Of a stretch of DNA of 64,000 nt, positions 23,638 through 44,892 are shown piece after piece. Where the stretch lies: assembly GCF_000007005.1 (NCBI RefSeq), contig NC_002754.1, one strand, 5' to 3'. The translations under genes were made by a program, and so were the position numbers. The notes under the pieces are model-generated. The model did no database searches and was not told where the DNA came from. It was given only the letters and a program-made list of their open reading frames with translations. The stretch comes from Saccharolobus solfataricus P2. GTDB taxonomy: Archaea > Thermoproteota > Thermoprotei_A > Sulfolobales > Sulfolobaceae. Numbering within the stretch: position 1 is the first letter of the stretch; every line of letters starts with the position of its first letter.

Positions 23638-24024
23638 TTTTTCAAGAAATGTTTCTGGGTTTTTTATATCGTATAAGACTGTAATTTTACCGTTTTTTAA
23701 AATAATGTAAATTGAGCCACACTTTAATTTTTTTGCTATAGGCCCTTGTGAGATAAAAGTATCCTTAAAATTTTCCGCTTTAACTACTTTTTTACCTAAT
23801 AATGATTTTATTATTATCCCACTCTCAGAGATGCAGTAAGTATAACTCTTGAACCACGCAATTATAAAAAGTAATATAGCATACCATATGCCAACGAAAA
23901 TAAGATAATTAATTACGCTAGTTATCTCCAAGAATAAGGAAAAAATGGTAAGTATAATAGTCCCTTCAACGAGAAGCCTTCTTCCAGTTGGTTTCGTACA
24001 ACCAACAAGCGACTTTTCTCCCAT
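23617..24024 (-). CDS. Membrane protein with bacterial PH-like domain
   Basis: Two TM helices followed by Y.Y.ISE.GIIIK, QGPIAKKLKCGSIYI. Confidence 0.7.
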   Translation of the reverse strand: MGEKSLVGCTKPTGRRLLVEGTIILTIFSLFLEITSVINYLIFVGIWYAILLFIIAWFKSYTYCISESGIIIKSLLGKKVVKAENFKDTFISQGPIAKKLKCGSIYIILKNGKITVLYDIKNPETFLEKIQSSRP

Positions 24025-24937
24025 TTATTTCCACCAATGGTGGTTCCTTTTCCTTACATACTGACATAGCAAAAGGACATCTGGGATTGAATCTGCATCC
24101 GCTAGGCGGATTTATTAAGCTGGGCACTTCCCCGCTTGGTGGCTTAAGCTCCTTCTTTCCCAATTCTGGTACTGAGCTAAGCAGTGATTGAGTATATGGA
24201 TGCATTGGTTCCGAAATAACTTCTTTTGTATTTCCTTCTTCAACAATTTTTCCCGCATACATAATTATGACTCTATCAGATATGTATCTAGCTACCGCGA
24301 TGTTGTGGGTAATGAAGAGGTATGTAAGTTTTCTTTCCTTTTGTAGGTCTACAAGTAGATTAAGAATTTGTGCTTGTACTGATGCATCTAAAGCTGAAGT
24401 CGGTTCATCTAAAATTAAAAAATCCGGCTCTTTTGCAAGCGCTCTTGCTATTGCAACTCTCTGCGTTTGCCCTCCAGACAATTCTCTAGGATACTTATCT
24501 TTTACGTAATTATAATCAAGACCAACTTCCTCTAATAACTTCTTGACTCTTTCTTCCCTTTTCTCCTTCATGGCTTCTCTAACAATATCCTTGACTTTCA
24601 TTCTTGGATTTATGGATGTCATAGGATTTTGGAAAACCATATGTATATGTTTTCTAACATGATTTATATTGCGATCATTTACCTCCATTCCCATAAAGAT
24701 TAAATTTCCACCAGTAGGCTTTTCCAATGTAGCTAGTACCTTGCCTAATGTGGTTTTACCAGAACCACTTTCACCCACAACACCTAAAACTTCGCCTTTC
24801 CTTATCTCCACGGATACGTTATCTAATGCTCTAACATAAATTGGGGGCTCTCTCGCTAATGATTCCAGTATTCCCCTCTTCTTTGCAAGGTAGTATTTAT
24901 TTATATTAATTGCCTTGTAAAGTATACTATCACTCAT
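23966..24937 (-). CDS. dppF: Oligopeptide ABC transporter ATPase
   Basis: GESGSGKT, LSGGQTQR, ILDEPT, HPYT, C-terminal GCRF.PRC..C Fe-S motif. Confidence 0.93.
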   Translation of the reverse strand: MSDSILYKAININKYYLAKKRGILESLAREPPIYVRALDNVSVEIRKGEVLGVVGESGSGKTTLGKVLATLEKPTGGNLIFMGMEVNDRNINHVRKHIHMVFQNPMTSINPRMKVKDIVREAMKEKREERVKKLLEEVGLDYNYVKDKYPRELSGGQTQRVAIARALAKEPDFLILDEPTSALDASVQAQILNLLVDLQKERKLTYLFITHNIAVARYISDRVIIMYAGKIVEEGNTKEVISEPMHPYTQSLLSSVPELGKKELKPPSGEVPSLINPPSGCRFNPRCPFAMSVCKEKEPPLVEINGRKVACWLYETNWKKASR

Positions 24938-25904
24938 ATAACCAACACCTTATTTTTCTTCCATTTTTCTCAATAATGCTTGGCTCTTTCTTTCTACAAA
25001 TATCGAAAACTTTACTACATCTATTACTAAACTTACATCCAGTAGGTAATGCAAAAAACGATGGTGGATTACCTGGAATAGCAGTTAACTTTTGATTTTT
25101 ATCCCCAGATGGTATACTCGCTACTAACCCTTGGGTGTATGGATGCATTGGTGATTTTAAAACTTCTTCAACTTTTCCGTCCTCCATAATTCTTCCTGCG
25201 TACATTACTACTATTCTATCTGATACTACGTAAGCTAAGGAAATATCATGGGTTATAAAAAGAATGCTTGTATTTATTTCCTTATTTAATTGTTTAAACA
25301 GATTAACCACTTGCGCTTGTATTGTAACGTCCAATGCAGATGTTGGTTCATCCGCTATGAGCAATTTGGGCTTTAATAATAAAGCCATAGAAATAACTAT
25401 TCTTTGAACTTGTCCACCTGAAAGTTGGTGAGGGTAACGATCAATAATGGAATAAGGATCTGGAAGTCTTAAATCTTTTAGAACTTCAATAACATCTCTC
25501 ATTAAACTTTCTTCTTCAGCCTTCTTTCCTTCTCTTTGATATCTTATTTTAACAGCTTCTAAGAGCTGAGAGCCTACCTTCTTTACTGGATTTAAGCTAT
25601 TTAATGGATTTTGAAATATCATGAAAACCCATGTTCCTCTATATTTCTGCAGTTCGCTATCTTTTAACTTAGCTAAATTAACTCCATCTACTATGATATC
25701 GCCTTGAATTCTCGCATTCGGAGGTAAAATTCTGGATATTGCGTGGCCTAATGTAGATTTTCCAGAACCGCTTTCTCCAACAACTCCTACTATTTCCCCT
25801 TTTTCTACATCTAGGTTTACATCACTTAATACTTTAACCCAGCTAATTAGTGTATTATAGTAAACGTTCAAATTTCTAATCTGAAGCACTACCATATTAT
25901 TCAC
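24930..25904 (-). CDS. dppD: Oligopeptide ABC transporter ATPase
   Basis: GESGSGKS, YPHQLSGGQVQR, IADEPT, GCKFSNRC. Confidence 0.93.
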   Translation of the reverse strand: MNNMVVLQIRNLNVYYNTLISWVKVLSDVNLDVEKGEIVGVVGESGSGKSTLGHAISRILPPNARIQGDIIVDGVNLAKLKDSELQKYRGTWVFMIFQNPLNSLNPVKKVGSQLLEAVKIRYQREGKKAEEESLMRDVIEVLKDLRLPDPYSIIDRYPHQLSGGQVQRIVISMALLLKPKLLIADEPTSALDVTIQAQVVNLFKQLNKEINTSILFITHDISLAYVVSDRIVVMYAGRIMEDGKVEEVLKSPMHPYTQGLVASIPSGDKNQKLTAIPGNPPSFFALPTGCKFSNRCSKVFDICRKKEPSIIEKNGRKIRCWLYE

Positions 25905-26801
25905 CTAATAGACTATTCTTCCAGCTACTACATCTTGTAATCTGTCACCTAATAGTACAAAACCTACGACAATAATTAGAATAGTCAACCCTGGAAATAA
26001 GGCCCACCACCAGTATTGCGGTAAACCAGTAACACCATTTGCTGCCATTTCTCCTAATTCTGGGATTGGAGGCGTTATTCCTATTCCTAGAAACGCTAAG
26101 GTCGAATAAGTTAGTATTACGTTACCAAAATCCAATGCTGCATAGGCTAATACAGGGTCTATGGCGTTTAGAAAAATATATCTGTAGAACAGTGATATTC
26201 TAGATACGTTACTTAATTTTGCGGCAGAGATGTAGTCCATGTTCTTTATCCTTAACGTTTGTGCCCTATAGAATCTAGCATAGGTTGGCCACCACACTAC
26301 CGCTAAGCCTAGTATAGTGGCGAAGAAGGTAGCCTTTAATGGTACAGTTATTGCGATAACTAATATTAATGCGGGCAAGGATAGAAAGGCGTCAGTAACT
26401 CTCATTAGGATTTCATCTACAATACCGCCTAGATAACCCGCAAGTATTCCTAATATTCCTCCTATGATTATAGCTGAAAACACTACCACTATTGCTACGA
26501 ATGCATCTCTAGGTAATGCGTATAAAATTCTTGAAAGAATATCTTCCCCTTCTGCATTAGTACCTAAAAGGAAAGTAGATGAAGGAGGATGAAAAGCCAA
26601 CTGTAAATTATATTGGAAGGGATTATGTGGAAGGAGTATATAACCTAAATATTGTTTTCTAAGATAACTTGACAATATCTCTAATATTCCTTGTATGAGA
26701 GACCATATTAGGAAAAGGCTTACTATAATTAATCCCAATAATCCAGCCTTATCTCTAATTAGCGCCTTTAACATAAATCTAATTCCGGAACTTTCACTCA
26801 A
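25905..26801 (-). CDS. dppC: Oligopeptide ABC permease
   Basis: LLGT..GEDI.SR, MRVTDAFLSLP, EAA-like loop, FPGL. Confidence 0.92.
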   Translation of the reverse strand: MSESSGIRFMLKALIRDKAGLLGLIIVSLFLIWSLIQGILEILSSYLRKQYLGYILLPHNPFQYNLQLAFHPPSSTFLLGTNAEGEDILSRILYALPRDAFVAIVVVFSAIIIGGILGILAGYLGGIVDEILMRVTDAFLSLPALILVIAITVPLKATFFATILGLAVVWWPTYARFYRAQTLRIKNMDYISAAKLSNVSRISLFYRYIFLNAIDPVLAYAALDFGNVILTYSTLAFLGIGITPPIPELGEMAANGVTGLPQYWWWALFPGLTILIIVVGFVLLGDRLQDVVAGRIVY

Positions 26802-27825
26802 CTATCCTCACCCTTGGATCTAGAACCCCGTAAAGTATATCTGCTATAAGATTCGCTATTATTATTGCAATTCCAACAATTATTGTTGTCCCCAAAATTG
26901 ATGTGTAATCTAGACTTTCTATTGCTTGAGTAATGAAATACCCCATTCCATGATATTGGAATATATCCTCAATCACGACTGCCCCAGCTACTGAGTATCC
27001 GAAAAGCAAAGCAATCAATGTTACTAATGGTATCGATGCATTTCTTAAAACCACACCATATACAACTCTTCTTCTACTAAGCCCCTTCATGAGACTAAGT
27101 TTAGCGAAGTCAGATTCCATATAATCCAGCATTGAAGCTCTGGCTATTCTAGTCACTATTCCAAAACTGACCAACGCAATCGCTATAACAGGCAAGACCA
27201 TATGGTGGACTAAACTAGAAAAATAAGGCCAATCCCCTGCTAACATCGCGTTAAGCAAAGGAAAAGGTGTTATAGACTTTGGCGGAGTAAGAACTGGGTT
27301 GACAGTACCGGTAGGGGGTAATAATCTGAGATAGTATGCTATAACTAGCTGTAATATAACAGCAATTAAAAATGGCGGAGATGCCCAAGTAACTAAGTAA
27401 ACGCCACGGACCAGATAATCCAGCGGTTTATTTCTGTTTGATGCAGCTATGGCGCCAGTAAACAAACCAATAACTACGGAAAGTATTGTTGCTGGTATTA
27501 CCAACTCTAGGGTTCTTGGTAAATATTTTCCAATCAGCGTAATCACCGGTACCTTATATGTTGGATCTATACCGAAATTTCCATGTAGTACATTAATTAT
27601 GTAGTTAATTATTTGGATGTAAAGGGGTTGGTCAAGTCCATATTGTTTGGCTACCTGTTCTAACTCTGTGTAGGTCGCATGTGGCCCAGTGTATAGCCTT
27701 GCTAAGGCTAAGGGATTTGGTGCTATTATATGTATCATAATAAAAACCAATATAATTAGTAATATTAGGGTAATGAAAGCATTAATGATTCTTCTTATGA
27801 TAAAGAAAACTATATTTATGGACAT
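26794..27825 (-). CDS. dppB: Oligopeptide ABC permease
   Basis: YGLDQPL, LPRTLEL, TRIARASML, LYGVLDPRVR. Confidence 0.92.
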   Translation of the reverse strand: MSINIVFFIIRRIINAFITLILLIILVFIMIHIIAPNPLALARLYTGPHATYTELEQVAKQYGLDQPLYIQIINYIINVLHGNFGIDPTYKVPVITLIGKYLPRTLELVIPATILSVVIGLFTGAIAASNRNKPLDYLVRGVYLVTWASPPFLIAVILQLVIAYYLRLLPPTGTVNPVLTPPKSITPFPLLNAMLAGDWPYFSSLVHHMVLPVIAIALVSFGIVTRIARASMLDYMESDFAKLSLMKGLSRRRVVYGVVLRNASIPLVTLIALLFGYSVAGAVVIEDIFQYHGMGYFITQAIESLDYTSILGTTIIVGIAIIIANLIADILYGVLDPRVRIVE

Positions 27826-27914
27826 ACCATGTCCATTTAAATAAAGTTTGAGGGTACTAATATATTTATTCTCACAAAGTAAACGAGGAAAGAAAAAGAA
27901 AAATAAAGATGACT

Positions 27915-30095
27915 TTAGAACCCTGGACCTCCTCTACCTCTTCCTCTTAAGAGGACTACTGCTACTACTATTATAATTATCACGATGACTATTCCTATTA
28001 CTGCATAAATTAGTGTAGATGAGGAAGATGAAGTAGTTGTCGTCATACTGGTTACTGACGTAGTAATATTCGTAGCACCACCAAATACAATACTTGTTGT
28101 CGTAGTTTGAAGCGTAGTAGTTGTTGTAGAGGAGGTCGTGCTGGTTGAAGTTGATATAGTTATAGTGTATGGTTGATAATACATTAGGTTATAGTAATAG
28201 CCTATGAATGGGTTATATACAAATCCTTTCACATAGGGCTGGACAAAGTAATATACTACAGGGTTTGGTAACCAAGCGTATGGTGCTTGTTGATACAATA
28301 TCTGATATACTTTAGCCACCTCTAAAGTTTGTTGTGTTTGATTTGTTAAGAAGGGTAAATTCTCGTATATTTGCTGTAATGTTGAAATATTAACCCACGC
28401 TAAATCTCCAGATATTCCACCGTATAATACATCAGTTTGTGCCATTAATTCTTGGAAAATCGGATCTGGCCAATCAGGGAACCAGCCTAAATCTATCAGA
28501 GCAGGTGTGCCACTTGGTGTTATCCAGTTGTCGGTTACGGAAGGTAGGACATACTGTATTGATGTTGAAATCCCTATCTTTTGTAAGCTTTCTTGAATTA
28601 TTGTTAGTTGTTCTTGCTCTAACTCATTCACAGGTGCTAAAGCGTATATAGTTAATGTGCCTAATTGCTTACCATTAGTATCACCTATCGTAGTTCCGTT
28701 AGGCAATACAACATAGAAGTGCCCTTCATATCCAGCTTCATTCAAGTAGTGTAAGGCTAAGGATAGGTTGTAGGTGTAGGGGTGTAACTTATCTAATTGC
28801 ATAACTTCGTTATAGAGTGGGAATACCGGAGATATTGGACCTAAATACTCTATTGCTAGCGTTTGATTTTGGAATTTGAATATATCTAATTCTGCGGTAT
28901 AGTTTATAGCGTGAACTATTGCTTGCCTAAATGCAGTAATGTTAGTAGGGAAGATTTGCGTATTCATTGCAATGTAGAATACTGCTGCCTCATAACCTAA
29001 ATTTGCAAATATTTGGTTAAAACTTACATATTTATTATACTGATATGCAGAGTACATTTGCTGTAAGAATGGTAAGCTAACGTATGAAATTTGTGCTTGA
29101 TTCGTAGCAAAATCCTCAACTCTATTATTGTGGCTTAATCCGTATTTTATGTCAATAACTGGTATATGTCCCGGTTGAGCTACAAGTGGTATGTTAGATA
29201 AATTGGCAGCCCAATAATGTGGATTCTTCACTAATACGATCTCAGATAAACTAGGTCCCACACTCTTAATCACATAAGGACCAGTTCCTTCCATACCATT
29301 GTCATTAATATATGAGTTAGGAGTATTTGGCTGAACTCCACCATGTTCATCAATAAAGACTGGATTAACTATTGCTCCCCACCAGCTAGCTATATCTAAT
29401 AGGAAGTACCTATAGGGTTCAAGTGTATTTATCTCGACCTCATAAGGACCCTTAACTACTACCGCTTGGTATGGGTATTCCATGATTTTCTGTATTGTAG
29501 TATTCGCAGCGTTGAAATGAGATAGTATTGATGCAAGTACATTCGCAGCTAGTGTTGCGTTCTTAGTAGTCGGTAATCCAGTAACGTTTTGTATTGCTGC
29601 TGCTACACCCCACGGTAAGGCATATCCAGTCTGTCCATATTGAGTTGAATTGAATAGTAGTTCAATATAGTTAGCTACACCAGGGCCTTGTCCCATTAGT
29701 ATGGTCCTATAGAACGAGAACCAAACAGTACTAGCGTTTACTTGTACTCCATCTGGGAAGTATACTCCATGTCTTATGAAGAATGTCCAGTTCTCATAGT
29801 TTGTGGTTGACCAGTTCTGGGCTATAACTGGAACAACTTGTAAATAATTCGAACCGTTAAATTCCACTAGTTCTTGAAATATTGCTTGATATAACGGTCC
29901 ATCTTGAACGTAAAATCCAGTAGCTGGGTCAAGTGCATCAGGAGGTGCTGTTTGGGAAACGTCAATAAGTATAGATGAGTTTGGCGGAGATATTGTTAGT
30001 GATGTTTGTGCTGAAGTTTGCAATAAAAATAGTGATGGTAGAATTATGCCTATTAACATTATTGATAAAAGCGCTAAACCCTTGAGGCTAGACAT
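27915..30095 (-). CDS. dppA: Peptide-binding protein (family 5), S/T-rich linker and C-terminal TM anchor
   Basis: LDPA, GTGPY, FRQAI.HAIN; Thr/Ser tract before the TM; N-terminal LKG/LA could be a class III signal. Confidence 0.9.
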   Translation of the reverse strand: MSSLKGLALLSIMLIGIILPSLFLLQTSAQTSLTISPPNSSILIDVSQTAPPDALDPATGFYVQDGPLYQAIFQELVEFNGSNYLQVVPVIAQNWSTTNYENWTFFIRHGVYFPDGVQVNASTVWFSFYRTILMGQGPGVANYIELLFNSTQYGQTGYALPWGVAAAIQNVTGLPTTKNATLAANVLASILSHFNAANTTIQKIMEYPYQAVVVKGPYEVEINTLEPYRYFLLDIASWWGAIVNPVFIDEHGGVQPNTPNSYINDNGMEGTGPYVIKSVGPSLSEIVLVKNPHYWAANLSNIPLVAQPGHIPVIDIKYGLSHNNRVEDFATNQAQISYVSLPFLQQMYSAYQYNKYVSFNQIFANLGYEAAVFYIAMNTQIFPTNITAFRQAIVHAINYTAELDIFKFQNQTLAIEYLGPISPVFPLYNEVMQLDKLHPYTYNLSLALHYLNEAGYEGHFYVVLPNGTTIGDTNGKQLGTLTIYALAPVNELEQEQLTIIQESLQKIGISTSIQYVLPSVTDNWITPSGTPALIDLGWFPDWPDPIFQELMAQTDVLYGGISGDLAWVNISTLQQIYENLPFLTNQTQQTLEVAKVYQILYQQAPYAWLPNPVVYYFVQPYVKGFVYNPFIGYYYNLMYYQPYTITISTSTSTTSSTTTTTLQTTTTSIVFGGATNITTSVTSMTTTTSSSSSTLIYAVIGIVIVIIIIVVAVVLLRGRGRGGPGF

Positions 30096-30239: not shown

Positions 30240-31187
30240 CTATATCTTAACACTTTTATGTACTCCATCATCCATTAAGGCTACACAGTAACTTGCTATT
30301 CTAGCCAATTCCCTTGCCAGTTCTCTGCATTCTATCTTGCTTCCATACACTATCTTGTTTATTTCTTTCATACTTTCCCTTATACTCCTTACGTGATCTA
30401 TATTTTCGTCGAAAAATACTTCTCGAGATTTCTCAAACATATTTACAATGATTTTAATTATGGAATTCAGTTCTTTATCGTTGGATGTGTTTCCACATTC
30501 TGTTATGGCTAGGGATGCGGTTTTTATATGAGATAGCATTCTTCCCATGTCACGCATTGCTATTGCATAGAGTATTAGATCTCTAGTTGGCAAGCCTTTT
30601 ACTACAAATTCCTCCTCTTTCTGTGAGACTAGTGCTATTTCCCTTATTACTGAATTGTATAATTTGTTTAACTCTTCAGCACGGTTTTTCAAATCTATAG
30701 CCATCTCCTTACTAGGATTTTCAATTATCTTTTCCAGATCCTTTAGTAGTACTAGTAATTTACTAGAGAAAGTTTTCATTCTTTCGACCACGTTAGTATT
30801 AACATCATCTTGAACTTTGAACGTAATATAGTTAAAGCTTTCACTCTCAATTGTTAAACCTGGTAAATATAATTGCAAATTTTTTAGCTCATCCTTTATA
30901 GGTGCTGATATTACGGACTTCGATTTTATCTCTATTTCTGAAATCCCTTGCATATAGTATACCGTTATCAAGTATTTGGTAGTTTCTAGATCAATAAGAT
31001 CAAGGTCAATTATCTTTCTAGTAATATAATCCCTTATAGGTTTTATTAATAGCTCTCCATTCTTTTCTATAACAAAAACCTCACTTTTAGCATCTAAGTT
31101 ATTTCTCCTAACCCATTCTGGAGGTAATGTTATTATGTAACTGCCACCTTTAATTTTCTGAATTCTTCTCCTTAGATTCTTCTCCAT
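30240..31187 (-). CDS. AbrB/SpoVT-PhoU family regulator
   Basis: RRIQKIKGGSYIITLPPEWV N-terminus plus two PhoU-like helical repeats. Confidence 0.85.
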   Translation of the reverse strand: MEKNLRRRIQKIKGGSYIITLPPEWVRRNNLDAKSEVFVIEKNGELLIKPIRDYITRKIIDLDLIDLETTKYLITVYYMQGISEIEIKSKSVISAPIKDELKNLQLYLPGLTIESESFNYITFKVQDDVNTNVVERMKTFSSKLLVLLKDLEKIIENPSKEMAIDLKNRAEELNKLYNSVIREIALVSQKEEEFVVKGLPTRDLILYAIAMRDMGRMLSHIKTASLAITECGNTSNDKELNSIIKIIVNMFEKSREVFFDENIDHVRSIRESMKEINKIVYGSKIECRELARELARIASYCVALMDDGVHKSVKI

Positions 31188-31229
31188 TAATATATAAAAA
31201 TTAAAGACCTAATAAAAAGGTTTGTGAAT

Positions 31230-32240
31230 TCAGAATATTGAAGCTACTAAATCATCTTCCTTTAGTTCTATATCTTCATCCCCATTTATCCCAATCTCCG
31301 GCATTGAGGGAACCTTAACGTTAAATCTCTTAACATTACTAGCCACTCTGGCAACAGCTTCTCTCCAAATCCTCTCTCTTTCCTCAATCGTTGGCAATCC
31401 TAAACCAGCGTCAATTGCTAGCTCCTCCATTTTCTCGTGTACCTCTTTGTACCATGGAGGCAATTTCCAGAACTCCTTAGGGGGTTTATAGGTTATTAAA
31501 GATAGGAAGACAAAACCAGCTCTTATCTGTTTAGTTACAAACATCTTCTTCTCTTCATTCATTTTATTTAAGTTATCAGTTAATATTAAGTGTGTAAAAG
31601 CATAATGTCTAGTCTCATCTACAGTTAAATTTCTAAACGCGTCCTTAAATGTGGGTATTTTAGTCTTATCCTTCATTCCACTAAATACTGTTGTAGCCGC
31701 AGCTTCACCCATCATAAAAGATGTAAATAGAATATCCAGAGTGTATTTATTATAAGCTTCAATATAACCTTTCCAATACCTAGAACCGTTCCACCAAACC
31801 CACTCAACGTTTAGCTTAGCCTTCCTTTCCAAATCATCTTGTGGTTTAAAATTAAAGGGAAATCCTTTCATTGCCTTATCTATTGCAAATCCACACAGCA
31901 CATTATGTCTATTCTCATCAAATGTTATCGTCGTTAGGAGGGCTTTTATGGTTACTGGTAATCTTTTTTCACTAGCTTTTACTAATGCGTAAGCGAAAAC
32001 CGGTGTCGCGTTATCGAAGTTAGATAACAGAGCCCACCAATAGGCCAACGCTAATCTCTGTTTTCTATCAAGGCCAGATATTATTTCCTCGTATTTTTTC
32101 CAGTCTAAATCTTCCTCATCCCATTGCTCCTTTTTGGCCCTCCTATAAAGTCTCATAGCTTTCTCGTTATCAAACTCCCATGCGGGTGGATAGACATTAT
32201 CCTCAGGATATATTGGATCATCATTATAATTTATATCCAT
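31230..32240 (-). CDS. Ferritin-like diiron-carboxylate protein (putative oxygenase)
   Basis: LYRRAKKEQWD, FDENRH and VDETRH (two D-E-x-R-H), MGEAAA. Confidence 0.8.
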   Translation of the reverse strand: MDINYNDDPIYPEDNVYPPAWEFDNEKAMRLYRRAKKEQWDEEDLDWKKYEEIISGLDRKQRLALAYWWALLSNFDNATPVFAYALVKASEKRLPVTIKALLTTITFDENRHNVLCGFAIDKAMKGFPFNFKPQDDLERKAKLNVEWVWWNGSRYWKGYIEAYNKYTLDILFTSFMMGEAAATTVFSGMKDKTKIPTFKDAFRNLTVDETRHYAFTHLILTDNLNKMNEEKKMFVTKQIRAGFVFLSLITYKPPKEFWKLPPWYKEVHEKMEELAIDAGLGLPTIEERERIWREAVARVASNVKRFNVKVPSMPEIGINGDEDIELKEDDLVASIF

Positions 32241-32349
32241 GTATCCACCATATATATGTTATTGATTCAAATATATAAGCTTTTCCAGACACTTAAAAAA
32301 AATGAAGATTAAGTAAACTATAAGATAAGAATAGAAATTAGGTTCTCCT

Positions 32350-32715
32350 CTAATTATCCAGATGGTATACTAAAGCAGTAACGTAAGCCACGAGCTTTCC
32401 ATCTTCATTTTTTACAATTATCCTATAAAGGGAAGTAGTTTTTCCGCTGCTTTCCTCAAATGCTTCTGCTATTACTTTCTCTCCTTCTTTTACCGGCCTT
32501 CTAAAATCGATATCCATATGTAAGGCTACTGAATCACGAGAGAAGTTACTAATGTATTCGAAAGCTGCATCAGCGATGGCGAAAATAAAAGAACCATGGG
32601 CGGTGTTATGTAAGTTTAAGAAATCTTTAGCCACAACTCCAGAAACCCTAGCGTAACCTTCCCTTATCTCCTCCAATTCTATGTTAAGAAATTTAAGAAA
32701 AGGACTCTCTTTCAT
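32350..32715 (-). CDS. paaI: PaaI-type hot-dog thioesterase
   Basis: LNLHNTAHGSFIFAIADAAF. Confidence 0.88.
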   Translation of the reverse strand: MKESPFLKFLNIELEEIREGYARVSGVVAKDFLNLHNTAHGSFIFAIADAAFEYISNFSRDSVALHMDIDFRRPVKEGEKVIAEAFEESSGKTTSLYRIIVKNEDGKLVAYVTALVYHLDN

Positions 32716-32718
32716 TAT

Positions 32719-33468
32719 TTAAACTCCCTTAAATTTAGGCTCTCTTTTCTCTTTGAATGATGATATACCTTCCTTAAAGTCCTCAGTTTTTCCTAAATAA
32801 CCTTGTATGGCGGATTCGTACTCTAAAAACCTTTCTAGATCATTATACAATACTAAATTAGCCATTCTCTTTCCAGCAATATAAGACTGGAATGGACCAT
32901 TTAGGATTTTATTAGCCATTTCCTCAGCGTCGTAAAGTGGATTTTCCGATATCTTCAACAATCCCCATCTCTCGGCATCCTCTGCAGTAAATTCCCCTCC
33001 TAGGACAGCAATCTCATAGGCTCTTTGATCTCTAGTCAGCTTCAAAAGGAAGTACGCTACTCCAGTGTCTGAAGCTAATCCAAGTCTTTGAAATGCAGTA
33101 ACGAATTTGACTTCACGCTTAGCGAATTTGAAATCTGTAGATAAGCTTATCCCTATACAAGCTCCAGCTGTAACACCATTTATTGCAGCTATGTAAATTT
33201 TATCTGAAAAACGTATCTCCCTAATTATTGGATAAAACGTCTCCCGTAAGTCTATCGTAAAATCTGGGGCGAACTCATTTACGTCAGCCCCTACGCAGAA
33301 TGCCCTTCCTTCACCAGTCAGTATTACAGTTCTAATTTTCGGATTAGCGTTAATTTCTTTAAGTTTTGATATCAGTTCATTTCTCATTTCCAAGTTCAAC
33401 GCGTTTAATTTATCAGCTCTACTTATTGTAACTACTACGTACCCATCTTTATTATCTACTTTTATCAT
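32719..33468 (-). CDS. Crotonase family protein (PaaG-like isomerase)
   Basis: AFCVGAD, INGVTAGA, DTGVAYFL (Asp in place of the hydratase Glu), EDFKEG. Confidence 0.8.
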   Translation of the reverse strand: MIKVDNKDGYVVVTISRADKLNALNLEMRNELISKLKEINANPKIRTVILTGEGRAFCVGADVNEFAPDFTIDLRETFYPIIREIRFSDKIYIAAINGVTAGACIGISLSTDFKFAKREVKFVTAFQRLGLASDTGVAYFLLKLTRDQRAYEIAVLGGEFTAEDAERWGLLKISENPLYDAEEMANKILNGPFQSYIAGKRMANLVLYNDLERFLEYESAIQGYLGKTEDFKEGISSFKEKREPKFKGV

Positions 33469-34231
33469 TCTCCCACCTAGGTTTTCTCTTCTCTAAAAAC
33501 GCTCTCATACCTTCTTTAGCCTCTTTTGTATTTAAAGCCAAATAGAAATTCCTTCTTTCGAAGTCTAATCCTTGCTGTAGTAAAGTATCCCAGGCTCTAG
33601 CAACTGCCTCTTTAGCTAAAATTATAGATATTATTGGCTTTTCAGCTATTTCCCTCGCTAGTCTAATTGCCTCATCAATTAGTGAGTTATCTGGTACTAC
33701 CTTATTTACTAGTCCATATCTTTCAGCTTCTTTAGAGTCTATTAATTTCCCAGTAAGCACTAGTTCCATTGCCTTATACTTTCCTAATACTCTAGTTAAT
33801 CTCTGAGTACCTCCTGCTCCTGGCATAATACCTAAATTTATTTCTGGTTGACCCAGTTTTGCGGATTCTGAGGCAATTATAATATCACATGCCATTGCTA
33901 ATTCTAGCCCTCCTCCGGCTGTGATACCGTTTAACGCAGCTATAACTGGTTTTTTAAACGTTCTCAACTTTTCCCATAAAGGCATATGACCCTTTTTCAT
34001 TATTTCCTCAAGGGGCGTTTCTAGCATCTCTTTAACGTCTGCCCCTGCCGAAAACGCTTTTCCATTCCCAGTTATTATTACGACTTTAATCTTGTCATCA
34101 TTATCTAACTTGTTCAAGACATCAACTAATTCATCAACCATTTGGAAGTTGATTGCATTTAACTTATCTGGTCTGTTAAGTTTTATAATTCCTATATTAT
34201 CTATAACTTCTATTTGTATTGTACTATACAT
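33452..34231 (-). CDS. Enoyl-CoA hydratase (PaaF-like)
   Basis: AFSAGAD, GGGLELAMACD, PEINLGIMPGAGGTQRL; ATG 34231 preferred. Confidence 0.9.
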   Translation of the reverse strand: MYSTIQIEVIDNIGIIKLNRPDKLNAINFQMVDELVDVLNKLDNDDKIKVVIITGNGKAFSAGADVKEMLETPLEEIMKKGHMPLWEKLRTFKKPVIAALNGITAGGGLELAMACDIIIASESAKLGQPEINLGIMPGAGGTQRLTRVLGKYKAMELVLTGKLIDSKEAERYGLVNKVVPDNSLIDEAIRLAREIAEKPIISIILAKEAVARAWDTLLQQGLDFERRNFYLALNTKEAKEGMRAFLEKRKPRWENDKSR

Positions 34232-34313
34232 ATATATGTAATTCACCTGCATATAGTACTATTCGCAAAAGTTTATATAGTTTAGTATTGTAAGAAATCA
34301 TGGTTAATCCAAT

Positions 34314-35477
34314 ATGACAAGAAGGGTAGCTGTAATAGGAGTAGGTAATTCGAAGTTCGGGAGAAGAGATGACGTTTCTATTCAAGAGTTAGCCTGGGAA
34401 TCTATTAAAGAAGCGTTGAATGATAGTGGTGTATCTCAAAGTGATATAGGACTAGTGGTTATAGGTAGCACTGCCTATAGAGGTATTGAATTATACCCTG
34501 CTCCAATCGTTGCTGAGTATTCTGGACTAACAGGCAAAGTTCCTCTACGCGTTGAGGCAATGTGCGCTACAGGATTAGCTGCAGCCTTATCCGCATATAC
34601 TGCAGTAGCTTCAGGTTTAGTTGATATTGCTATGGCAGTAGGAGTTGATAAGATGACTGAAGTTGACACCTCAACATCGTTAGCAATAGGCGGAAGAGGG
34701 GGTAATTATCAGTGGGAATATCATTTCTATGGGACCACATTCCCAACTTATTACGCACTTTATGCAACAAGACATATGGCAGTTTTTGGCACAACTGAGG
34801 AGCAAATGGCTCTAGTTTCGGTAAAGGCGCATAAGTATGGTTCAATGAACCCTAAAGCTCACTTTCAAAAACCGGTTACCGTAGAAGAAGTTCTCAAGTC
34901 CAGAGTAATCTCTTGGCCAATAAAGTTACTTGACTCTTGTCCAATAAGTGATGGTTCCGCCACTGCAGTATTTGCATCGGAGGAGAAAGTGAAGGAGTTG
35001 AAGATTGATTCTCCAGTTTGGATAACTGGAATTGGTTATGCGAATGATTACGCTTATGTTGCAAGAAGAGGAGAATGGGTGGGATTTAAGGCAACTCAGT
35101 TAGCTGCAAGGCAAGCTTATGAGATGGCTAAGGTAACTCCTAATGATATAGAAGTAGCTACGGTACATGACGCGTTTACAATAGCTGAGATAATGGGATA
35201 TGAGGATTTAGGTTTTACCGAAAAGGGAAAAGGAGGCAAGTTTATAGAAGAGGGGCAAAGCGAGAAAGGTGGAAAAGTAGGAGTAAATCTATTTGGTGGT
35301 CTAAAAGCTAAGGGGCATCCATTAGGAGCTACTGGACTTTCTATGATTTATGAGATAACTAAACAATTGAGAGATGAAGCTGACAAATTACAACAACCCC
35401 TTAAGAAGTATATTGGGCTTGTTCACAATGTAGGTGGCACAGGTCACTTTGCATATGTTATGATTCTAAGAAGGTGA
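34314..35477 (+). CDS. acaB: Thiolase (SCP-x/archaeal acetyl-CoA acetyltransferase type)
   Basis: RVEAMCATG, HDAFT, KGHPLGATG, HNVGG. Confidence 0.92.
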   Translation: MTRRVAVIGVGNSKFGRRDDVSIQELAWESIKEALNDSGVSQSDIGLVVIGSTAYRGIELYPAPIVAEYSGLTGKVPLRVEAMCATGLAAALSAYTAVASGLVDIAMAVGVDKMTEVDTSTSLAIGGRGGNYQWEYHFYGTTFPTYYALYATRHMAVFGTTEEQMALVSVKAHKYGSMNPKAHFQKPVTVEEVLKSRVISWPIKLLDSCPISDGSATAVFASEEKVKELKIDSPVWITGIGYANDYAYVARRGEWVGFKATQLAARQAYEMAKVTPNDIEVATVHDAFTIAEIMGYEDLGFTEKGKGGKFIEEGQSEKGGKVGVNLFGGLKAKGHPLGATGLSMIYEITKQLRDEADKLQQPLKKYIGLVHNVGGTGHFAYVMILRR

Positions 35478-35483
35478 CCTTAG

Positions 35484-35870
35484 ATGCAAATAGATGCAAT
35501 ACCGTTATCAATAAAATATAAGATCAAATACCCGGACGAATTTATTGAAGCAGTTAAGAGGGGAGAAATTGTAGCTACCAAATGTAAAAATTGTGGTTCC
35601 GTTTACTTTCCCCCTCAAAAGGATTGTTATAACTGTGGTAAGAATGAGATGGAGTGGATTAAAGTATCTAATGAGGGTGAAATAATGACTTATAGTGTAG
35701 TATCTCAGAAACCTCAAGGTTTCGAAAATTATGAAGACTACGTTATAGGGATAGTCAAGACAAAGGATGGGATAAATATAATGGCATGGATTAAAGGCCA
35801 ACCTAAGGTCGGTAATAAAGTAAGACTGACTACAGATGGTATGAGGATAATTGGCGAGGTGATAAGATGA
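35484..35870 (+). CDS. Zn-ribbon/OB-fold thiolase partner (DUF35)
   Basis: KCKNCGSVYFPPQKDCYNC followed by an OB fold. Confidence 0.9.
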   Translation: MQIDAIPLSIKYKIKYPDEFIEAVKRGEIVATKCKNCGSVYFPPQKDCYNCGKNEMEWIKVSNEGEIMTYSVVSQKPQGFENYEDYVIGIVKTKDGINIMAWIKGQPKVGNKVRLTTDGMRIIGEVIR

Positions 35871-37173
35871 GCGTTAAGTTAACTTATAATGAGATAGATC
35901 CCAAGGCATTAACTAAGGAAGAGATTAAAGAGATCCAGCGATTTAGACTTAGGGGTTTAATTAAAAGAGTTTATGAGAGCTCACCCTACTATCATAAGGT
36001 GTTTAAAGAAAGGGGATTAACGCCAGATGATATAAGAACTCTAGAGGATTTAGTTAAACTTCCTTTCACCACTAAGGAAGATTTAAGGAGATACGCTTAT
36101 CACATGGTGGCGATTTCTTAGCAGTTCCCTTTGGAAATTTAGTAGGATGGCATATGACATCAGGAACGACAGGAGTTCCCACAGTAAACGCTTATACTTG
36201 GAGCGATATTGAAATATGGACAAGCCTCGTAGCAAGAAGTCTAGTCACTGCTGGAGTTACAAAGAATGATATTGTTATGAACATTTATGGGTACGGGTTA
36301 TTCACTGGTGGGATTGGCTTACATCAAGGTATCCAGAGAATAGGGGCTAAGGTGATACCGTGGAGTACTGGCAGAACTGAAGCTTTAGCTCGGGCACTAA
36401 AGGACTTTAAAGCTACTGTAATAACTGGTACTCCATCTTACGAATTGCTAATAGCTGAAACTTTACGCAAACTAAACATAGATGCTGAGAAGGAATTGCA
36501 ACTTAGATTAGCAATCCCCGGTGCTGAAGCAATGTCAAAAGAGATGTTGGAGAGAATTGAGCACGAATTAGGACTAAAGGCTAGAGAAGGAAGGGCATTA
36601 GAAATTTATGGTTTAACCGAGGCTTTAGGGCCAGGAGTTGCACAAGAGTGTCCAGACGATAATCACGAATGGCTACATATATGGACTGATCATTATTTGG
36701 TTGAGATTATTGATCCAGAGACCGGTGAGAGAATTTCTGAAGATGAAGAAGGGGAAATGGTTATAACTACTCTCAGTAAGGAAGGGATGCCGTTAATTAG
36801 ATATAGAACGAGAGATATTACTAGACTTATTGAAAGTGATGATGAAATACCGTTTCCTAAAATAGGAATGTTAAAAGGGAGAGTAGATGATGTGATATTC
36901 TATAAAGGTGTGAAAGTATTCCCAACTGCTATATCGAATGTTTTAATGTCTTGCGAGGAGGTAAAAGAGTTTCAAATAGTAGTAGATAAGACTAATAGGG
37001 AGCATAGATTAATAGTTAGAGTAGAAACTGAAAAACCGTCAGAAAAATTAGCTGAAAAACTGATAGAAGAAATTAGAACAGTAGCATTTGTAACGCCTGA
37101 GGTGGAGTTTGTGAGTTTAGGCACACTGCCTAGATTTGAGGGTAAGTCTAAGAGGGTAGTTATTAAAGAGTAA
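35867..37173 (+). pseudogene. paaK: Phenylacetate-CoA ligase-like gene split by a 1-nt frameshift at about 36101
   Basis: ORF1 ends LPFTTKEDLRRYAY; the other frame continues HGGDFLAVPFGNLVGWHMTSGTTG; PLIRYRTRD, GRVDD intact downstream. Confidence 0.8.
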
Positions 37174-37229: not shown

Positions 37230-37592
37230 ATGGCTAAGCTTCTTTTCGTGATAATGGACGATCCAAACAATTTGTCTGAATCCATAAGAGCTGCTCACGC
37301 CTTACACTACGCAGTAGAGCTTAAGAAGGAAGGGCACGAGGTTTACGTTTATTTTGACGGGCTAGGTACCAAAATACCAATATCCGAAAGTCCTTATAAG
37401 GGATTACGACCAGCCTATGAGAGAGCATTAAAAGAGGAAATCATATTAGGTGCATGTGGTTATTGTGCATCTCCACCTCATTTGAATATTAGAGATAAAC
37501 TAATTAATTCAATAAAACTAATTGGAGATGAGGAGCATCATTACGCTTTTATTGATTTAATTAACGGAGGTTTCCAGATTATAATTTCATGA
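37230..37592 (+). CDS. DsrE-like protein
   Basis: VYFDGLG, ACGYCA. Confidence 0.8.
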   Translation: MAKLLFVIMDDPNNLSESIRAAHALHYAVELKKEGHEVYVYFDGLGTKIPISESPYKGLRPAYERALKEEIILGACGYCASPPHLNIRDKLINSIKLIGDEEHHYAFIDLINGGFQIIIS

Positions 37593-37761
37593 TGTAGTTT
37601 TGTGTATAATTATATACAGTATAGACATACTTTAATTTTAAAACATTTGTAATTTTAGGTATAACTAAATTAAGTAATAACATTCTTGAAAAAATATATT
37701 GTTGAAATAAACGTAATATTTATAAAGTATGAATGTAACATAGAATATAGGTGAGTAAAAA

Positions 37762-37995
37762 GTGAGTAGTCTTAAGATATATAAGGAATTGGATTTGACT
37801 AGTTCTTCGTGTGCTGGGCCTATTGGTGAGTTGTCCAGTGTTATTGATGAGTTGAGGGATGGCGAGGCTGTTAAGGTCATTTTGGGTGATGAGGCCACTA
37901 AGAAGGACATTACTTTGTGGAGTAAGAAGAAGGGCTTGAAAATAGTACAAGAGTCGCAAGAGGGAAGCAAGTACGTATTATTAATAAGCAAATAG
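37762..37995 (+). CDS. tusA: TusA/SirA sulfur carrier
   Basis: LDLTSSSCAGPI, DITLWSKKKG; GTG start. Confidence 0.85.
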   Translation: MSSLKIYKELDLTSSSCAGPIGELSSVIDELRDGEAVKVILGDEATKKDITLWSKKKGLKIVQESQEGSKYVLLISK

Positions 37996-38007
37996 GAGAT
38001 GAGGTAA

Positions 38008-39165
<1,158 letters not shown>

Positions 39166-39166
39166 C

Positions 39167-40674
<1,508 letters not shown>

Positions 40675-43551: not shown

Positions 43552-44400
43552 GTGTATCCGCCAGATTTTACATATGTTAGGGTTAGTAGCTCTGAGGAAG
43601 CTACAAAATTTCTAGAATCCCACGACGATGCAAGGCCTCTAGCTGGAGGACAAAGTTTAATTCCAATGCTTAAACTTCGTGTAATATCGCCCAATTATAT
43701 AGTTGACCTAAATCCTATAACGTCACTAAGTTATGTAAGAAGTTCCTTTAATTCAACTAAAATTGGTGCTCTAACTCGATATAATGAAATACTAAAGAAT
43801 GATCTAGTAAGGGTAAACGTTCCATTACTTCATCAAGCAGTTAGGGTAGTAGGAGATATGCAAGTTAGAAACTTAGGTACTATTGGTGGTAGCGCTGCAA
43901 ACGCTGATCCATCAGCTGATATCCCCACTGTACTTACTGCGTTAAACGCCGAAATTATTCTATCCTCAGCATCCGGCAATAGATCAGTTAATGCTCTAGA
44001 TTTCTTTAAAGGCGCATTCGCCACAGATTTAAGAAAAGGTGAAATTATCTCTGAAATTGTTTTACCTAACTTGGAGGGATATAGAACAATTTACAAAAAG
44101 GTCGTAAGAAGAGCTGGAGATTTTGCACTTGTATCTCTAGCATTAGCGATAAAATTGAGGCAAAATGAGATAGAGGATATTAGATTAGCTTATGGTGGAG
44201 TTGGGGAGAGACCATTCAGAGCGTTAGAAGTTGAGAAAAGTGTAATGGGTAAAAGGCTAAATGATGAGTTAGTAGAGGAAATTGTAAGTAAGGTTTCAAG
44301 TCAAGTAAATCCCCCTTCCGATACTAGGGGGAGTTCTTGGTATAGGAGGGAGGTTATGAAGGTTATAACTAGAAAAGCCTTAAAGGAGGTGTCGGGTTAA
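43552..44400 (+). CDS. cutB: Molybdo-hydroxylase FAD subunit (aldehyde oxidoreductase beta)
   Basis: LAGGQSLIP, QVRNLGTIGGS. Confidence 0.92.
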   Translation: MYPPDFTYVRVSSSEEATKFLESHDDARPLAGGQSLIPMLKLRVISPNYIVDLNPITSLSYVRSSFNSTKIGALTRYNEILKNDLVRVNVPLLHQAVRVVGDMQVRNLGTIGGSAANADPSADIPTVLTALNAEIILSSASGNRSVNALDFFKGAFATDLRKGEIISEIVLPNLEGYRTIYKKVVRRAGDFALVSLALAIKLRQNEIEDIRLAYGGVGERPFRALEVEKSVMGKRLNDELVEEIVSKVSSQVNPPSDTRGSSWYRREVMKVITRKALKEVSG

Positions 44401-44892
44401 ATGTTAATGGTTAATCAAGGAGAGAAAATTAAAATAAAAGTTAAGGTAAATGGAGTATTGTATGAGAGATATGTAAGTCCAAGGATACTATTAGTTGACT
44501 TTTTAAGGGAAGAGTTAGGCTTAACGGGAACGAAAATTGGATGTGATACTACAACTTGTGGCGCATGCACAGTTCTATTAAATGGTAAATCAGTAAAATC
44601 TTGTACATTGTTTGCAGTGCAAGCTGATGGTGCAGAAATAACTACAATTGAGGGTCTCTCAGTAGATTCTAAGCTTCATCCAATTCAAGAGGCGTTTAAG
44701 GAAAATTTCGCCCTTCAGTGTGGTTTCTGTACGCCGGGAATGATAATGCAGGCATATTTCTTGCTGAAAGAAAATCCAAATCCTTCTGAAGAGGAGGTTA
44801 GAGATGGACTTCACGGTAACATTTGTAGGTGTACTGGATATCAAAATATTGTTAAGGCAGTTTTAGATGCTTCAAGGAGGTTGAGAGCATGA
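44401..44892 (+). CDS. cutC: Molybdo-hydroxylase 2Fe-2S subunit
   Basis: [28 protein letters not shown]. Confidence 0.95.

Follow-up and report, generated by a model that had tools for sequence, protein, structure and literature searches.

Aerobic degradation of aromatic compounds by way of coenzyme A (CoA) esters, the 'hybrid' strategy, is thought to rest on two diiron epoxidases, PaaABCE and BoxAB. The first is the phenylacetyl-CoA 1,2-epoxidase PaaABC(D)E of E. coli and Pseudomonas, and the second is the benzoyl-CoA 2,3-epoxidase, whose BoxB subunit is a protein of about 470 amino acids (aa) with an NCBIfam model of its own. In the ibuprofen-CoA pathway of Sphingomonas Ibu-2 (IpfABDEF) an arylacetyl-type CoA ester is ring-oxygenated by a Rieske dioxygenase, after which a thiolase-like protein and DUF35 act, and the ChsH-Ltp2 hydratase-aldolase system of steroid degradation starts with a flavin dehydrogenase. 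Here we analysed a 64-kb stretch of the AT-rich (~35% GC) genome of Saccharolobus solfataricus P2 (NC_002754.1; the window), in which positions 30240-37173 hold a Paa-like gene cluster with a single stand-alone diiron protein of 336 aa, encoded at 31230-32240 on the minus strand.

Our favoured reading, to which we give a probability of roughly 0.45, is that this protein would be the catalytic part of an oxygenase that needs O2 and a reductant and acts on a CoA thioester. Such an enzyme would do the work of PaaABCE and BoxAB but have an independent origin, and its most likely substrate would be phenylacetyl-CoA or another arylacetyl-CoA close to it. Directly observed are which genes are present, how the diiron site is built, to which fold class the protein belongs, which neighbourhoods are conserved and that PaaA-D are missing. 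A Paa-like oxygenase role is proposed because the diiron site is complete and invariant, the structural model is confident, a PaaG-type crotonase recurs as partner, reductases adjoin the gene in bacteria, PaaA-D are absent and the context is aromatic.

Metal site, fold and nearest relatives of the diiron protein

Ninety-seven relatives, 37-89% identical to the window protein, were aligned with it. The metal-binding motif recognised in an earlier note on this DNA was confirmed: the ligand set comprises D76, E109-N-R-H112, E179 and E209-T-R-H212, of which E109, H112, E179, E209 and H212 are invariant in all 97 relatives, and position 76 is Asp in 87 and Glu in 10. The 33-residue spacing between D/E76 and E109 is shared with the R2-like ligand-binding oxidases (R2lox). 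E91 had been considered as the first metal ligand and was dropped, as the R2lox register and the spacing to E109 favour D76. Further residues common to the relatives are C116, T184, R154-Y-W, R211 and Q238. Four residues after H112, C116 is a Cys in 96 of the 97 sequences, at a position which we take to be that of the radical Tyr in ribonucleotide reductase (RNR) R2 and of Cys151 in methane monooxygenase, and T184 lies close to the ligand E179. As far as the alignment can tell, C116 and T184 are oxygenase-like traits rather than R2-like ones.

The AlphaFold (AF2) model is all-helical, with a predicted local distance difference test value (pLDDT) of 92.8 and a predicted template-modelling score (pTM) of 0.90. 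Ligands of the pattern D/E...ExxH...E...ExxH, this helical model and a Foldseek probability of 1.00 to R2/R2lox place the protein in the ferritin-like diiron-carboxylate superfamily. The 50 best Foldseek matches were all R2 or R2lox (E 4.5e-4 to 3.5e-3, template-modelling score 0.43-0.67), and a family profile run against all PDB sequences ranked R2lox first (1.4e-4), followed by RNR R2 (~1e-3), aldehyde deformylating oxygenase (0.055) and AurF (0.09), with no match to PaaA or BoxB at E <= 10.

A specific relation to PaaA or BoxB, both named for comparison in the earlier note, could be detected neither with profiles nor by fold comparison. Pfam PaaA_PaaC (PF05138) matched none of the 97 members at E <= 1, and a PaaA profile searched with hmmsearch against all open reading frames (ORFs) had no match in the window or in 80 loci holding homologues. 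Comparison by hhalign with E. coli PaaA and with two PaaA alignments returned probabilities of 0.3-1.2%, with 0.3% for a diverse alignment drawn from a search of 1.8 billion proteins; in the other, close alignment every homologue shared 78% or more of its residues with E. coli PaaA. Because hhalign is insensitive here, giving E. coli NrdB a probability of only 4.7% though its second ExxH motif was correctly aligned, these figures rule out membership of the PaaA family and not a distant superfamily kinship. No BoxB model was among the NCBIfam results for the diiron protein at E <= 0.01, and neither a BoxC-like long crotonase nor a BoxA-type gene was seen in the annotated neighbourhoods. BoxAB resembles the predicted system in combining one catalytic diiron subunit with one reductase and in passing its product to a crotonase-fold enzyme, but the ligase here is PaaK-type, with no benzoate-CoA ligase, and no crotonase has the size of BoxC.

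The nearest solved structures and sequences are those of R2lox (GkR2loxI, Rv0233 of M. tuberculosis and the R2lox of S. acidocaldarius) and class I RNR R2, at E 1.4e-4 to 2e-3 in the PDB profile search. The diiron protein resembles these in having a conserved, disordered C-terminal tail, but identity is 11-17%, a Cys and no Tyr stands at the R2 radical position, and its setting is one of CoA-ester catabolism with a dedicated reductase. The R2lox equivalog model NF006200 covered only residues 25-114 and gave 23.9 bits, where its cut-off is 194. Assignment to class I R2 is contradicted by the Cys at H112+4, in a register that comes from the position of the radical Tyr in R2 and the second motif in hhalign; no R1 gene was noticed in the annotated neighbourhoods, for which no R1 query was run. 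The earlier note had held that clustering with R2-like families would speak against an aryl-CoA epoxidase, and such clustering is weakly present, R2/R2lox being nearest. By its profiles and its model, the protein is a member of a distinct ferritin-like family, weakly nearest to R2/R2lox and outside PaaA, BoxB, AurF, R2lox and R2, and we found no paper characterising this family in the literature searched.

In databases the family goes by the names 'aminobenzoate oxygenase', 'rubrerythrin', 'ferritin family' and 'hypothetical', the first being attached to most named members. Pfam matches over the 97 members are all sub-threshold (Rubrerythrin in 95, AurF in 94, R2 in 50, acyl-ACP desaturase in 18 and COQ7 in 14). 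Taken at face value, the names 'aminobenzoate oxygenase' and 'AurF' would make the protein an arylamine N-oxygenase. The best of the 94 AurF matches reaches 4.6e-8, the NCBI names follow them, and AurF and CmlI are likewise single-subunit diiron oxygenases of similar size, with weak profile similarity over the second half. The window protein, however, scores 23.9 bits for AurF (PF11583) against a gathering threshold of 29.6, over some 100 residues (168-268), AurF comes behind R2lox and R2 in the PDB profile search, and none of the loci shows a biosynthetic or amino-arene context or an arylamine pathway, so that we regard N-oxygenation as very improbable.

In most members, archaeal and proteobacterial ones alike, a stretch that the model shows as disordered runs out in ...(I/V)(I/V)P(V/I)F, in place of which the Saccharolobus clade has ...VASIF (window 31230-31256, the last codons of the diiron gene). 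By analogy with the R2 tail, this conserved C-terminus may be a docking site for a partner, either the reductase or the crotonase.

Conserved neighbourhoods and partner enzymes

Members of the family were found at more than 592 loci in GTDB contigs with one genome per species, and the neighbourhood figures given here rest on the best 80. They occur in Sulfolobales, Thermoproteales, Marsarchaeota, Thermoplasmata, Nitrososphaerales, Dormibacterota, Melainabacteria, Actinomycetota, Alpha-, Beta- and 'Delta'-proteobacteria and Binatia; the earlier description of an archaeal enzyme was too narrow, as the family spans many bacterial phyla. Neighbours within 5-6 kb of the diiron gene, clustered de novo, include a crotonase (22-27 loci), a TetR regulator (21-25), a thiolase (14-17), a PaaK-like ligase (8-11), a 3-hydroxyacyl-CoA dehydrogenase (HADH; 10), an AbrB-PhoU regulator (8-9), a MaoC protein (7) and DUF35 (6-7), with an aldehyde dehydrogenase nearby at only 3 loci and a PaaI-like gene at only a few. 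Neither the 80 loci nor the window gave a match to PaaA, B, C or D in BLAST searches with E. coli PaaA-E. In a maximum-likelihood tree, at least five deep clades show the CoA-ester context, whose distribution is strongly clustered, requiring 12 changes against about 25 in shuffles, and none of 500 shuffles was as low.

The most constant partner of the diiron gene is a PaaG-type crotonase. Crotonases from the window (32719-33468), Pyrobaculum, Thermoplasmata, Nitrososphaerales, two deltaproteobacteria, an actinomycete, Variovorax and an Acetobacteraceae metagenome-assembled genome (MAG) were aligned with E. coli PaaG and PaaF. All those adjoining the diiron gene, that of the window included, lack both hydratase glutamates but have an Asp aligned with D136 of E. 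coli PaaG, the pattern of a PaaG-type (epoxide-to-oxepin) isomerase. PaaG was also their best or near-best NCBIfam model (TIGR02280, 168 bits in the window and 146-254 in relatives, against a cut-off of 345). The second crotonase of the window (33452-34252) keeps both glutamates, as PaaF does.

An NAD(P)H reductase with the domains Fer2+FAD_binding_6+NAD_binding_1, the plant-type [2Fe-2S] domain being N-terminal, is encoded at the bacterial loci L061, L063, L070, L072, L074 and L077 and on the Variovorax RA8 plasmid (L083). It lies directly 3' of the diiron gene in L070 and on the plasmid, divergent and adjacent in L072, and two genes off in L061 and L077. Such an adjoining reductase speaks for a catalytic (turnover) oxygenase or desaturase. 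In Sulfolobales no conserved reductase or ferredoxin was found beside the diiron gene, and the external reductant proposed in the earlier note agrees with the situation in archaea, where no reductase is clustered, whereas the bacterial relatives have their own [2Fe-2S]-FNR reductase next door.

The bacterial loci add further enzymes. The Variovorax operon consists of genes for TetR, MaoC, a PaaG-like crotonase, DUF35, a thiolase-like protein, a PaaK-like ligase, the diiron protein and the reductase, and is followed on the RA8 plasmid (L083 21072-24572) by a branched-chain-type ABC transporter, an FAD-linked oxidase, an Lrp regulator and a fused indolepyruvate:ferredoxin oxidoreductase, the last of which hints that aryl-pyruvates may feed the pathway. 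In an actinomycete MAG the order is reductase / diiron protein, HADH, PaaF-like protein, MaoC, PaaG-like crotonase, TetR, PaaI and thiolase. MaoC proteins resembling the PaaZ C-terminus occur in bacterial loci only and match just that (oxepin-CoA hydrolase) domain of PaaZ, the alphaproteobacterial one at 4.9e-30. Three bacterial thiolase-like proteins (L063 12680-13834, L074 12776-13930 and L083 9338-10492), which adjoin DUF35 and MaoC, lack the nucleophilic Cys and have GGGA for CATG. A Cys-less thiolase-like protein together with DUF35 and MaoC recalls the Ltp2 aldolase and IpfDE side-chain cleavage, which suggests that these proteins are retro-aldolases (Ltp2/IpfD-like) and no thiolases. 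By the same analogy, the oxygenated ester may in bacteria be cleaved to acetyl-CoA and a phenol or catechol. The archaeal clusters differ from the Ipf and ChsH-Ltp2 systems in having a true thiolase with its nucleophilic Cys; most of the relatives have HADH, and a PaaZ equivalent is present in none.

The make-up of the bacterial operons has to be weighed also with another reaction in mind, in which the diiron protein would be an O2-dependent acyl-CoA desaturase or beta-hydroxylase. It would then take the place of the flavin acyl-CoA dehydrogenase, in a route for beta-branched or alicyclic acyl-CoAs that resembles beta-oxidation or cleaves the side chain by hydratase and aldolase. MaoC, DUF35 and a Cys-less thiolase-like protein in one operon resemble the ChsH-Ltp2 hydratase-aldolase logic, no acyl-CoA dehydrogenase family is among the conserved neighbours in the 80 loci, and, apart from that step, ligase, hydratase, HADH and thiolase would make up a whole cycle. 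In addition, 18 of the 97 members weakly match the soluble acyl-ACP desaturases, and Fer2-FNR reductases also serve desaturases. On the other hand, the constant partner is an isomerase-type crotonase without the catalytic Glu and no hydratase, the ligase is PaaK-type, the context is aromatic, and we know of no diiron enzyme that introduces an alpha,beta double bond into a CoA ester. On balance we consider a desaturase or beta-hydroxylase unlikely.

In S. acidocaldarius (L082 6603-9861), whose diiron orthologue is AAY81578, by its number perhaps encoded close to the end of the genome, and in Pyrobaculum oguniense (L016 12257-15555) the diiron/ligase cluster directly borders on HpaB-type hydroxylase, extradiol dioxygenase and fumarylacetoacetate (FAA)-hydrolase-family genes. 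The P. oguniense stretch also contains molybdenum hydroxylase subunits and an acetoacetate-decarboxylase-like gene. The HpaB, extradiol dioxygenase and FAA-hydrolase genes would suit a CoA-dependent ring hydroxylase, with ligase, diiron protein and PaaI-like thioesterase as a bracket that converts arylacetate via arylacetyl-CoA and hydroxyarylacetyl-CoA to the free hydroxy-acid, which would then enter HpaB/extradiol (homoprotocatechuate-type) degradation. Such brackets have precedent in salicylyl-CoA 5-hydroxylase and 4-chlorobenzoyl-CoA dehalogenase, and in the window the PaaI-like gene, of a family that NCBIfam calls hydroxyphenylacetyl-CoA thioesterase, lies directly 5' of the diiron gene. 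Yet PaaI is found in few loci only, whereas the PaaG-type crotonase is most constant, and a hydroxylase would leave two crotonases, HADH and the thiolase with no role; this alternative, too, appears improbable to us.

The gene cluster of S. solfataricus

The inventory of 30240-37173 drawn up in the earlier note held throughout, all the listed genes being present, and Pfam and NCBIfam back each assignment. The genes form two divergent sets, whose proteins are 28-42% identical to E. coli Paa proteins (BLAST). On the minus strand, in the order of transcription, these are a PaaF-type enoyl-CoA hydratase (33452-34252; NF007239 PaaF 277.6 bits, 42.5% identity to E. coli PaaF), the PaaG-type crotonase (32719-33468; PRK06072 as best NCBIfam with 471 bits, then PaaG), a PaaI-like hotdog thioesterase (32350-32715; TIGR02286 5.2e-30, 104 bits against a cut-off of 118.9, 37.5% identity to E. 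coli PaaI) and, after a gap of 110 bp, the diiron gene and an AbrB(MazE)-PhoU regulator (30240-31187; Pfam MazE_antitoxin 2.2e-11, PhoU 3.2e-6). The plus strand encodes an archaeal SCP2-type thiolase (34314-35477; NF009228 824 bits) with its nucleophilic Cys in a CATG motif, its DUF35 partner of zinc ribbon and OB fold (35484-35870; Pfam zf-ChsH2 2.1e-12, OB_ChsH2_C 1.9e-15) and a PaaK-family ligase (35867-37173). In the 61-bp divergent intergenic region a box resembling a transcription factor B recognition element (BRE) and TATA element, aaagtttatata (34267-34279, plus strand), lies 35-47 nt 5' of the thiolase start and is its putative promoter. A protein encoded in the window is identical to one of Saccharolobus solfataricus LT549890.1, at 2.46 of 3.03 Mb.

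The same note had reported no multi-subunit epoxidase or reductase, and indeed BLAST and the PaaA profile found no PaaA/B/C/D/E, ferredoxin-NAD(P)H reductase, HADH or aldehyde dehydrogenase in the 64-kb window. MaoC was equally missing there, so that neither part of a PaaZ function of a Paa-type cluster is encoded. Taken across the family, the clusters resemble the PaaABC(D)E system in having PaaK-, PaaG-, PaaF-, PaaH-, PaaI- and thiolase-type genes, with TetR (PaaR-like) and, in bacteria, an NAD(P)H:[2Fe-2S] flavin reductase, and the predicted role of a diiron-carboxylate CoA-thioester oxygenase would be a further likeness. They differ in that the diiron protein, of 336 aa, stands as the sole subunit, PaaB, PaaC and PaaD being absent. 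The PaaE-like reductases, seen in only six bacterial loci of the 80, carry their ferredoxin domain at the N-terminus, the reverse of the domain order in PaaE.

A PaaK-like ligase is present as the earlier note had it, but a single-base gap splits it into two ORFs. Frame 0 stops at 36121, leaving an N-terminal fragment of 84 aa (35867-36121; TIGR02155 PaaK 3.7e-17), and the remainder reads in another frame (36076-37173), with an ORF of 339 aa from the ATG at 36154 (TIGR02155 2.8e-94, 40% identity to E. coli PaaK). The fragments of the frameshifted gene reach 62 and 316 bits with the PaaK equivalog TIGR02155, whose cut-off is 646, and are 38-40% identical to E. coli PaaK. Compared with the intact 435-aa allele of other S. 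solfataricus assemblies (L090, L093 and L094), the window gene has one single-base gap and is otherwise 100% identical, and two further S. solfataricus assemblies (L091 and L092) have a different single substitution, the ligase gene being split or uncalled in them. In S. acidocaldarius MW001 and S. islandicus, too, the ligase is intact. Unless the S. solfataricus differences are assembly errors, the comparison points to independent inactivation of the ligase at least twice in S. solfataricus, recent and repeated.

Regulator pair, promoter and stress context

The AbrB-PhoU and diiron genes form a pair at 8-9 crenarchaeal loci, some of which lack CoA genes. In five loci of uncultured Crenarchaeota (L017, L018, L019, L020 and L028) the pair occurs without CoA-ester genes, and ORFs of ~150 aa and ~190 aa are conserved alongside. 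In the window, a T-run follows the PaaI-like gene, and then a BRE/TATA-like box, aaaagcttatatatt (32270-32284, minus strand), lies 30-44 nt 5' of the diiron start codon. Judging from matching descriptions, the genome position and an adjoining peptide-type ABC transporter, the window genes are probably SSO2620 (regulator) and SSO2621 (diiron protein). In a microarray study of H2O2 stress, SSO2620, with an AbrB-like DNA-binding domain (COG0704), and the flanking ferritin/RNR-like SSO2621 were each induced about 2-fold, SSO2620 about 2.2-fold, and a role in iron sequestration or electron transfer was proposed by the authors (PMC2739297).

From this induction, from the pair without CoA genes in the five crenarchaeal loci and from the TATA-like box and T-run between the diiron gene and the PaaI operon, one could suppose that in S. 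solfataricus the pair is an independent iron/oxidative-stress module, for metal handling or peroxide/O2 detoxification, which merely adjoins the CoA-ester genes. A 2-fold induction is modest, however, the 336-aa R2-like architecture differs from that of iron-storage ferritins, and in bacteria NAD(P)H reductases adjoin the diiron gene and the link to a PaaG-like crotonase recurs across phyla. We therefore judge such a module to be quite unlikely.

On the regulator side, the cluster is adjoined by a five-gene peptide/nickel-type ABC transporter (23966-30095), one of whose components, a family-5 solute-binding protein of 726 aa, has a C-terminal anchor rich in Ser/Thr. On the other side, 3' of the ligase, there is a sulfur-related set (37230-40674) that starts with a 120-aa ORF having no Pfam matches and conserved in relatives, followed by a flavoprotein like sulfide:quinone reductase or flavocytochrome c sulfide dehydrogenase (38008-39165), a DsrE-like protein (39167-39547) and a repeat-rich DUF1641 protein (39541-40674); in sister assemblies a TusA-like gene is called within this set. 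Further on, a three-subunit molybdenum hydroxylase of the CO-dehydrogenase/xanthine-dehydrogenase family, with FAD-binding, [2Fe-2S] and molybdenum cofactor-binding subunits, is encoded at 43552-47138.

Proposed reaction and points against it

In the oxygenase reading that we favour, we infer the substrate, the regiochemistry, the electron donor and, in this genome, the tie to the flanking operon. A PaaK-like ligase, or an aryl-pyruvate oxidoreductase, would make the CoA thioester. The diiron centre would be reduced by the [2Fe-2S]-flavin reductase in bacteria and by a non-clustered ferredoxin or reductase in archaea, and would then activate O2 and oxygenate ring C1-C2, that is, the beta/gamma position of the acyl chain. 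The PaaG-type crotonase next door would isomerise the oxygenated product, and the later steps would fall to the PaaF-type hydratase, the HADH of relatives and the thiolase-DUF35 pair, with the PaaI-like thioesterase freeing CoA from dead-end hydroxylated esters. Whether the route is Paa-like or retro-aldol, the first step would be the same, an oxygenation at the ring carbon that bears the side chain.

The claim of the earlier note that the protein is an aryl-CoA oxygenase stands in part: it is the sole oxygenase candidate in a Paa-like gene set, has a PaaG-pattern crotonase beside it in about five deep lineages, and none of the 80 loci has PaaA-D, whereas the broken ligase, the lack of a nearby PaaH/PaaZ equivalent and the likely promoter of its own do not fit. 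Several observations weigh against the role as we propose it. The nearest solved relatives are R2/R2lox and no epoxidases, all those links being weak. About 60% of the 80 loci (Dormibacterota, Obscuribacterales, Nonomuraea and some Crenarchaeota) have no CoA-ester genes, and at most a TetR or AbrB-PhoU regulator could be recognised in them. The ligase of this strain is frameshifted, and it and other Paa-like genes of the window score under the NCBIfam equivalog cut-offs, so that the substrate need not be phenylacetate; HADH is missing from the window, and the archaeal clusters have no PaaZ-type hydrolase or aldehyde dehydrogenase. Because their thiolase-like partners have no nucleophilic Cys, the downstream chemistry of the bacteria may be retro-aldol side-chain cleavage instead of the Paa route. 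The diiron gene appears to have its own promoter and to be paired with AbrB-PhoU, and this pair, as SSO2620/SSO2621, was reported to be H2O2-induced (PMC2739297). Finally, both S. solfataricus and S. acidocaldarius are reported to have, at other loci, a gene classed by arCOG as a PaaA-like epoxidase subunit: SSO2017/2018 of S. solfataricus lies beside an enoyl-CoA hydratase and is induced by hydroxyurea (PMC5134839), and Saci_1770 of S. acidocaldarius matches PaaA with an HHpred probability of 99.96% (PMC6101591). These may constitute a second stand-alone PaaA-like system in the same organisms, in which case the earlier note's reservation about a paaABCE set elsewhere would come into play.

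In Metallosphaera javensis there are two diiron paralogues (L008 and L004), one in a Paa-like cluster and the other solitary, with no CoA-ester genes within 10 kb.

Significance for the family and its hosts

Taking the family as a whole, we tentatively propose, as a possibility somewhat short of even, that it could be a third class of diiron ring oxygenases for aryl-acyl-CoAs, with an evolutionary origin of its own. A single R2lox-like subunit, served by a Fer2-FNR reductase in bacteria or by free ferredoxin in archaea, would then replace PaaABCDE in a widespread Paa-like pathway, present in Sulfolobales, Thermoproteales, Thermoplasmata and Nitrososphaerales as well as in several phyla of bacteria, and this pathway would escape any survey whose markers are PaaA and PaaC. 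When phenylacetate degradation was surveyed with these two markers in 2026, archaeal cases came from Halobacteria only, and clusters of the present kind were left out by design (PMC13186573).

If the proposal is true, the pathway would be more widespread than thought, thermoacidophilic archaea included, and would employ a much simpler, one- or two-component and thermostable CoA-ester oxygenase. The name 'aminobenzoate oxygenase', which databases give to most named members, would prove misleading and could be corrected. Should a desaturase or a retro-aldol reading be the true one, the chemistry would be newer still. For the oxygenase role favoured here, the family would reveal a convergent recruitment of different ferritin-like scaffolds for arene-CoA activation.

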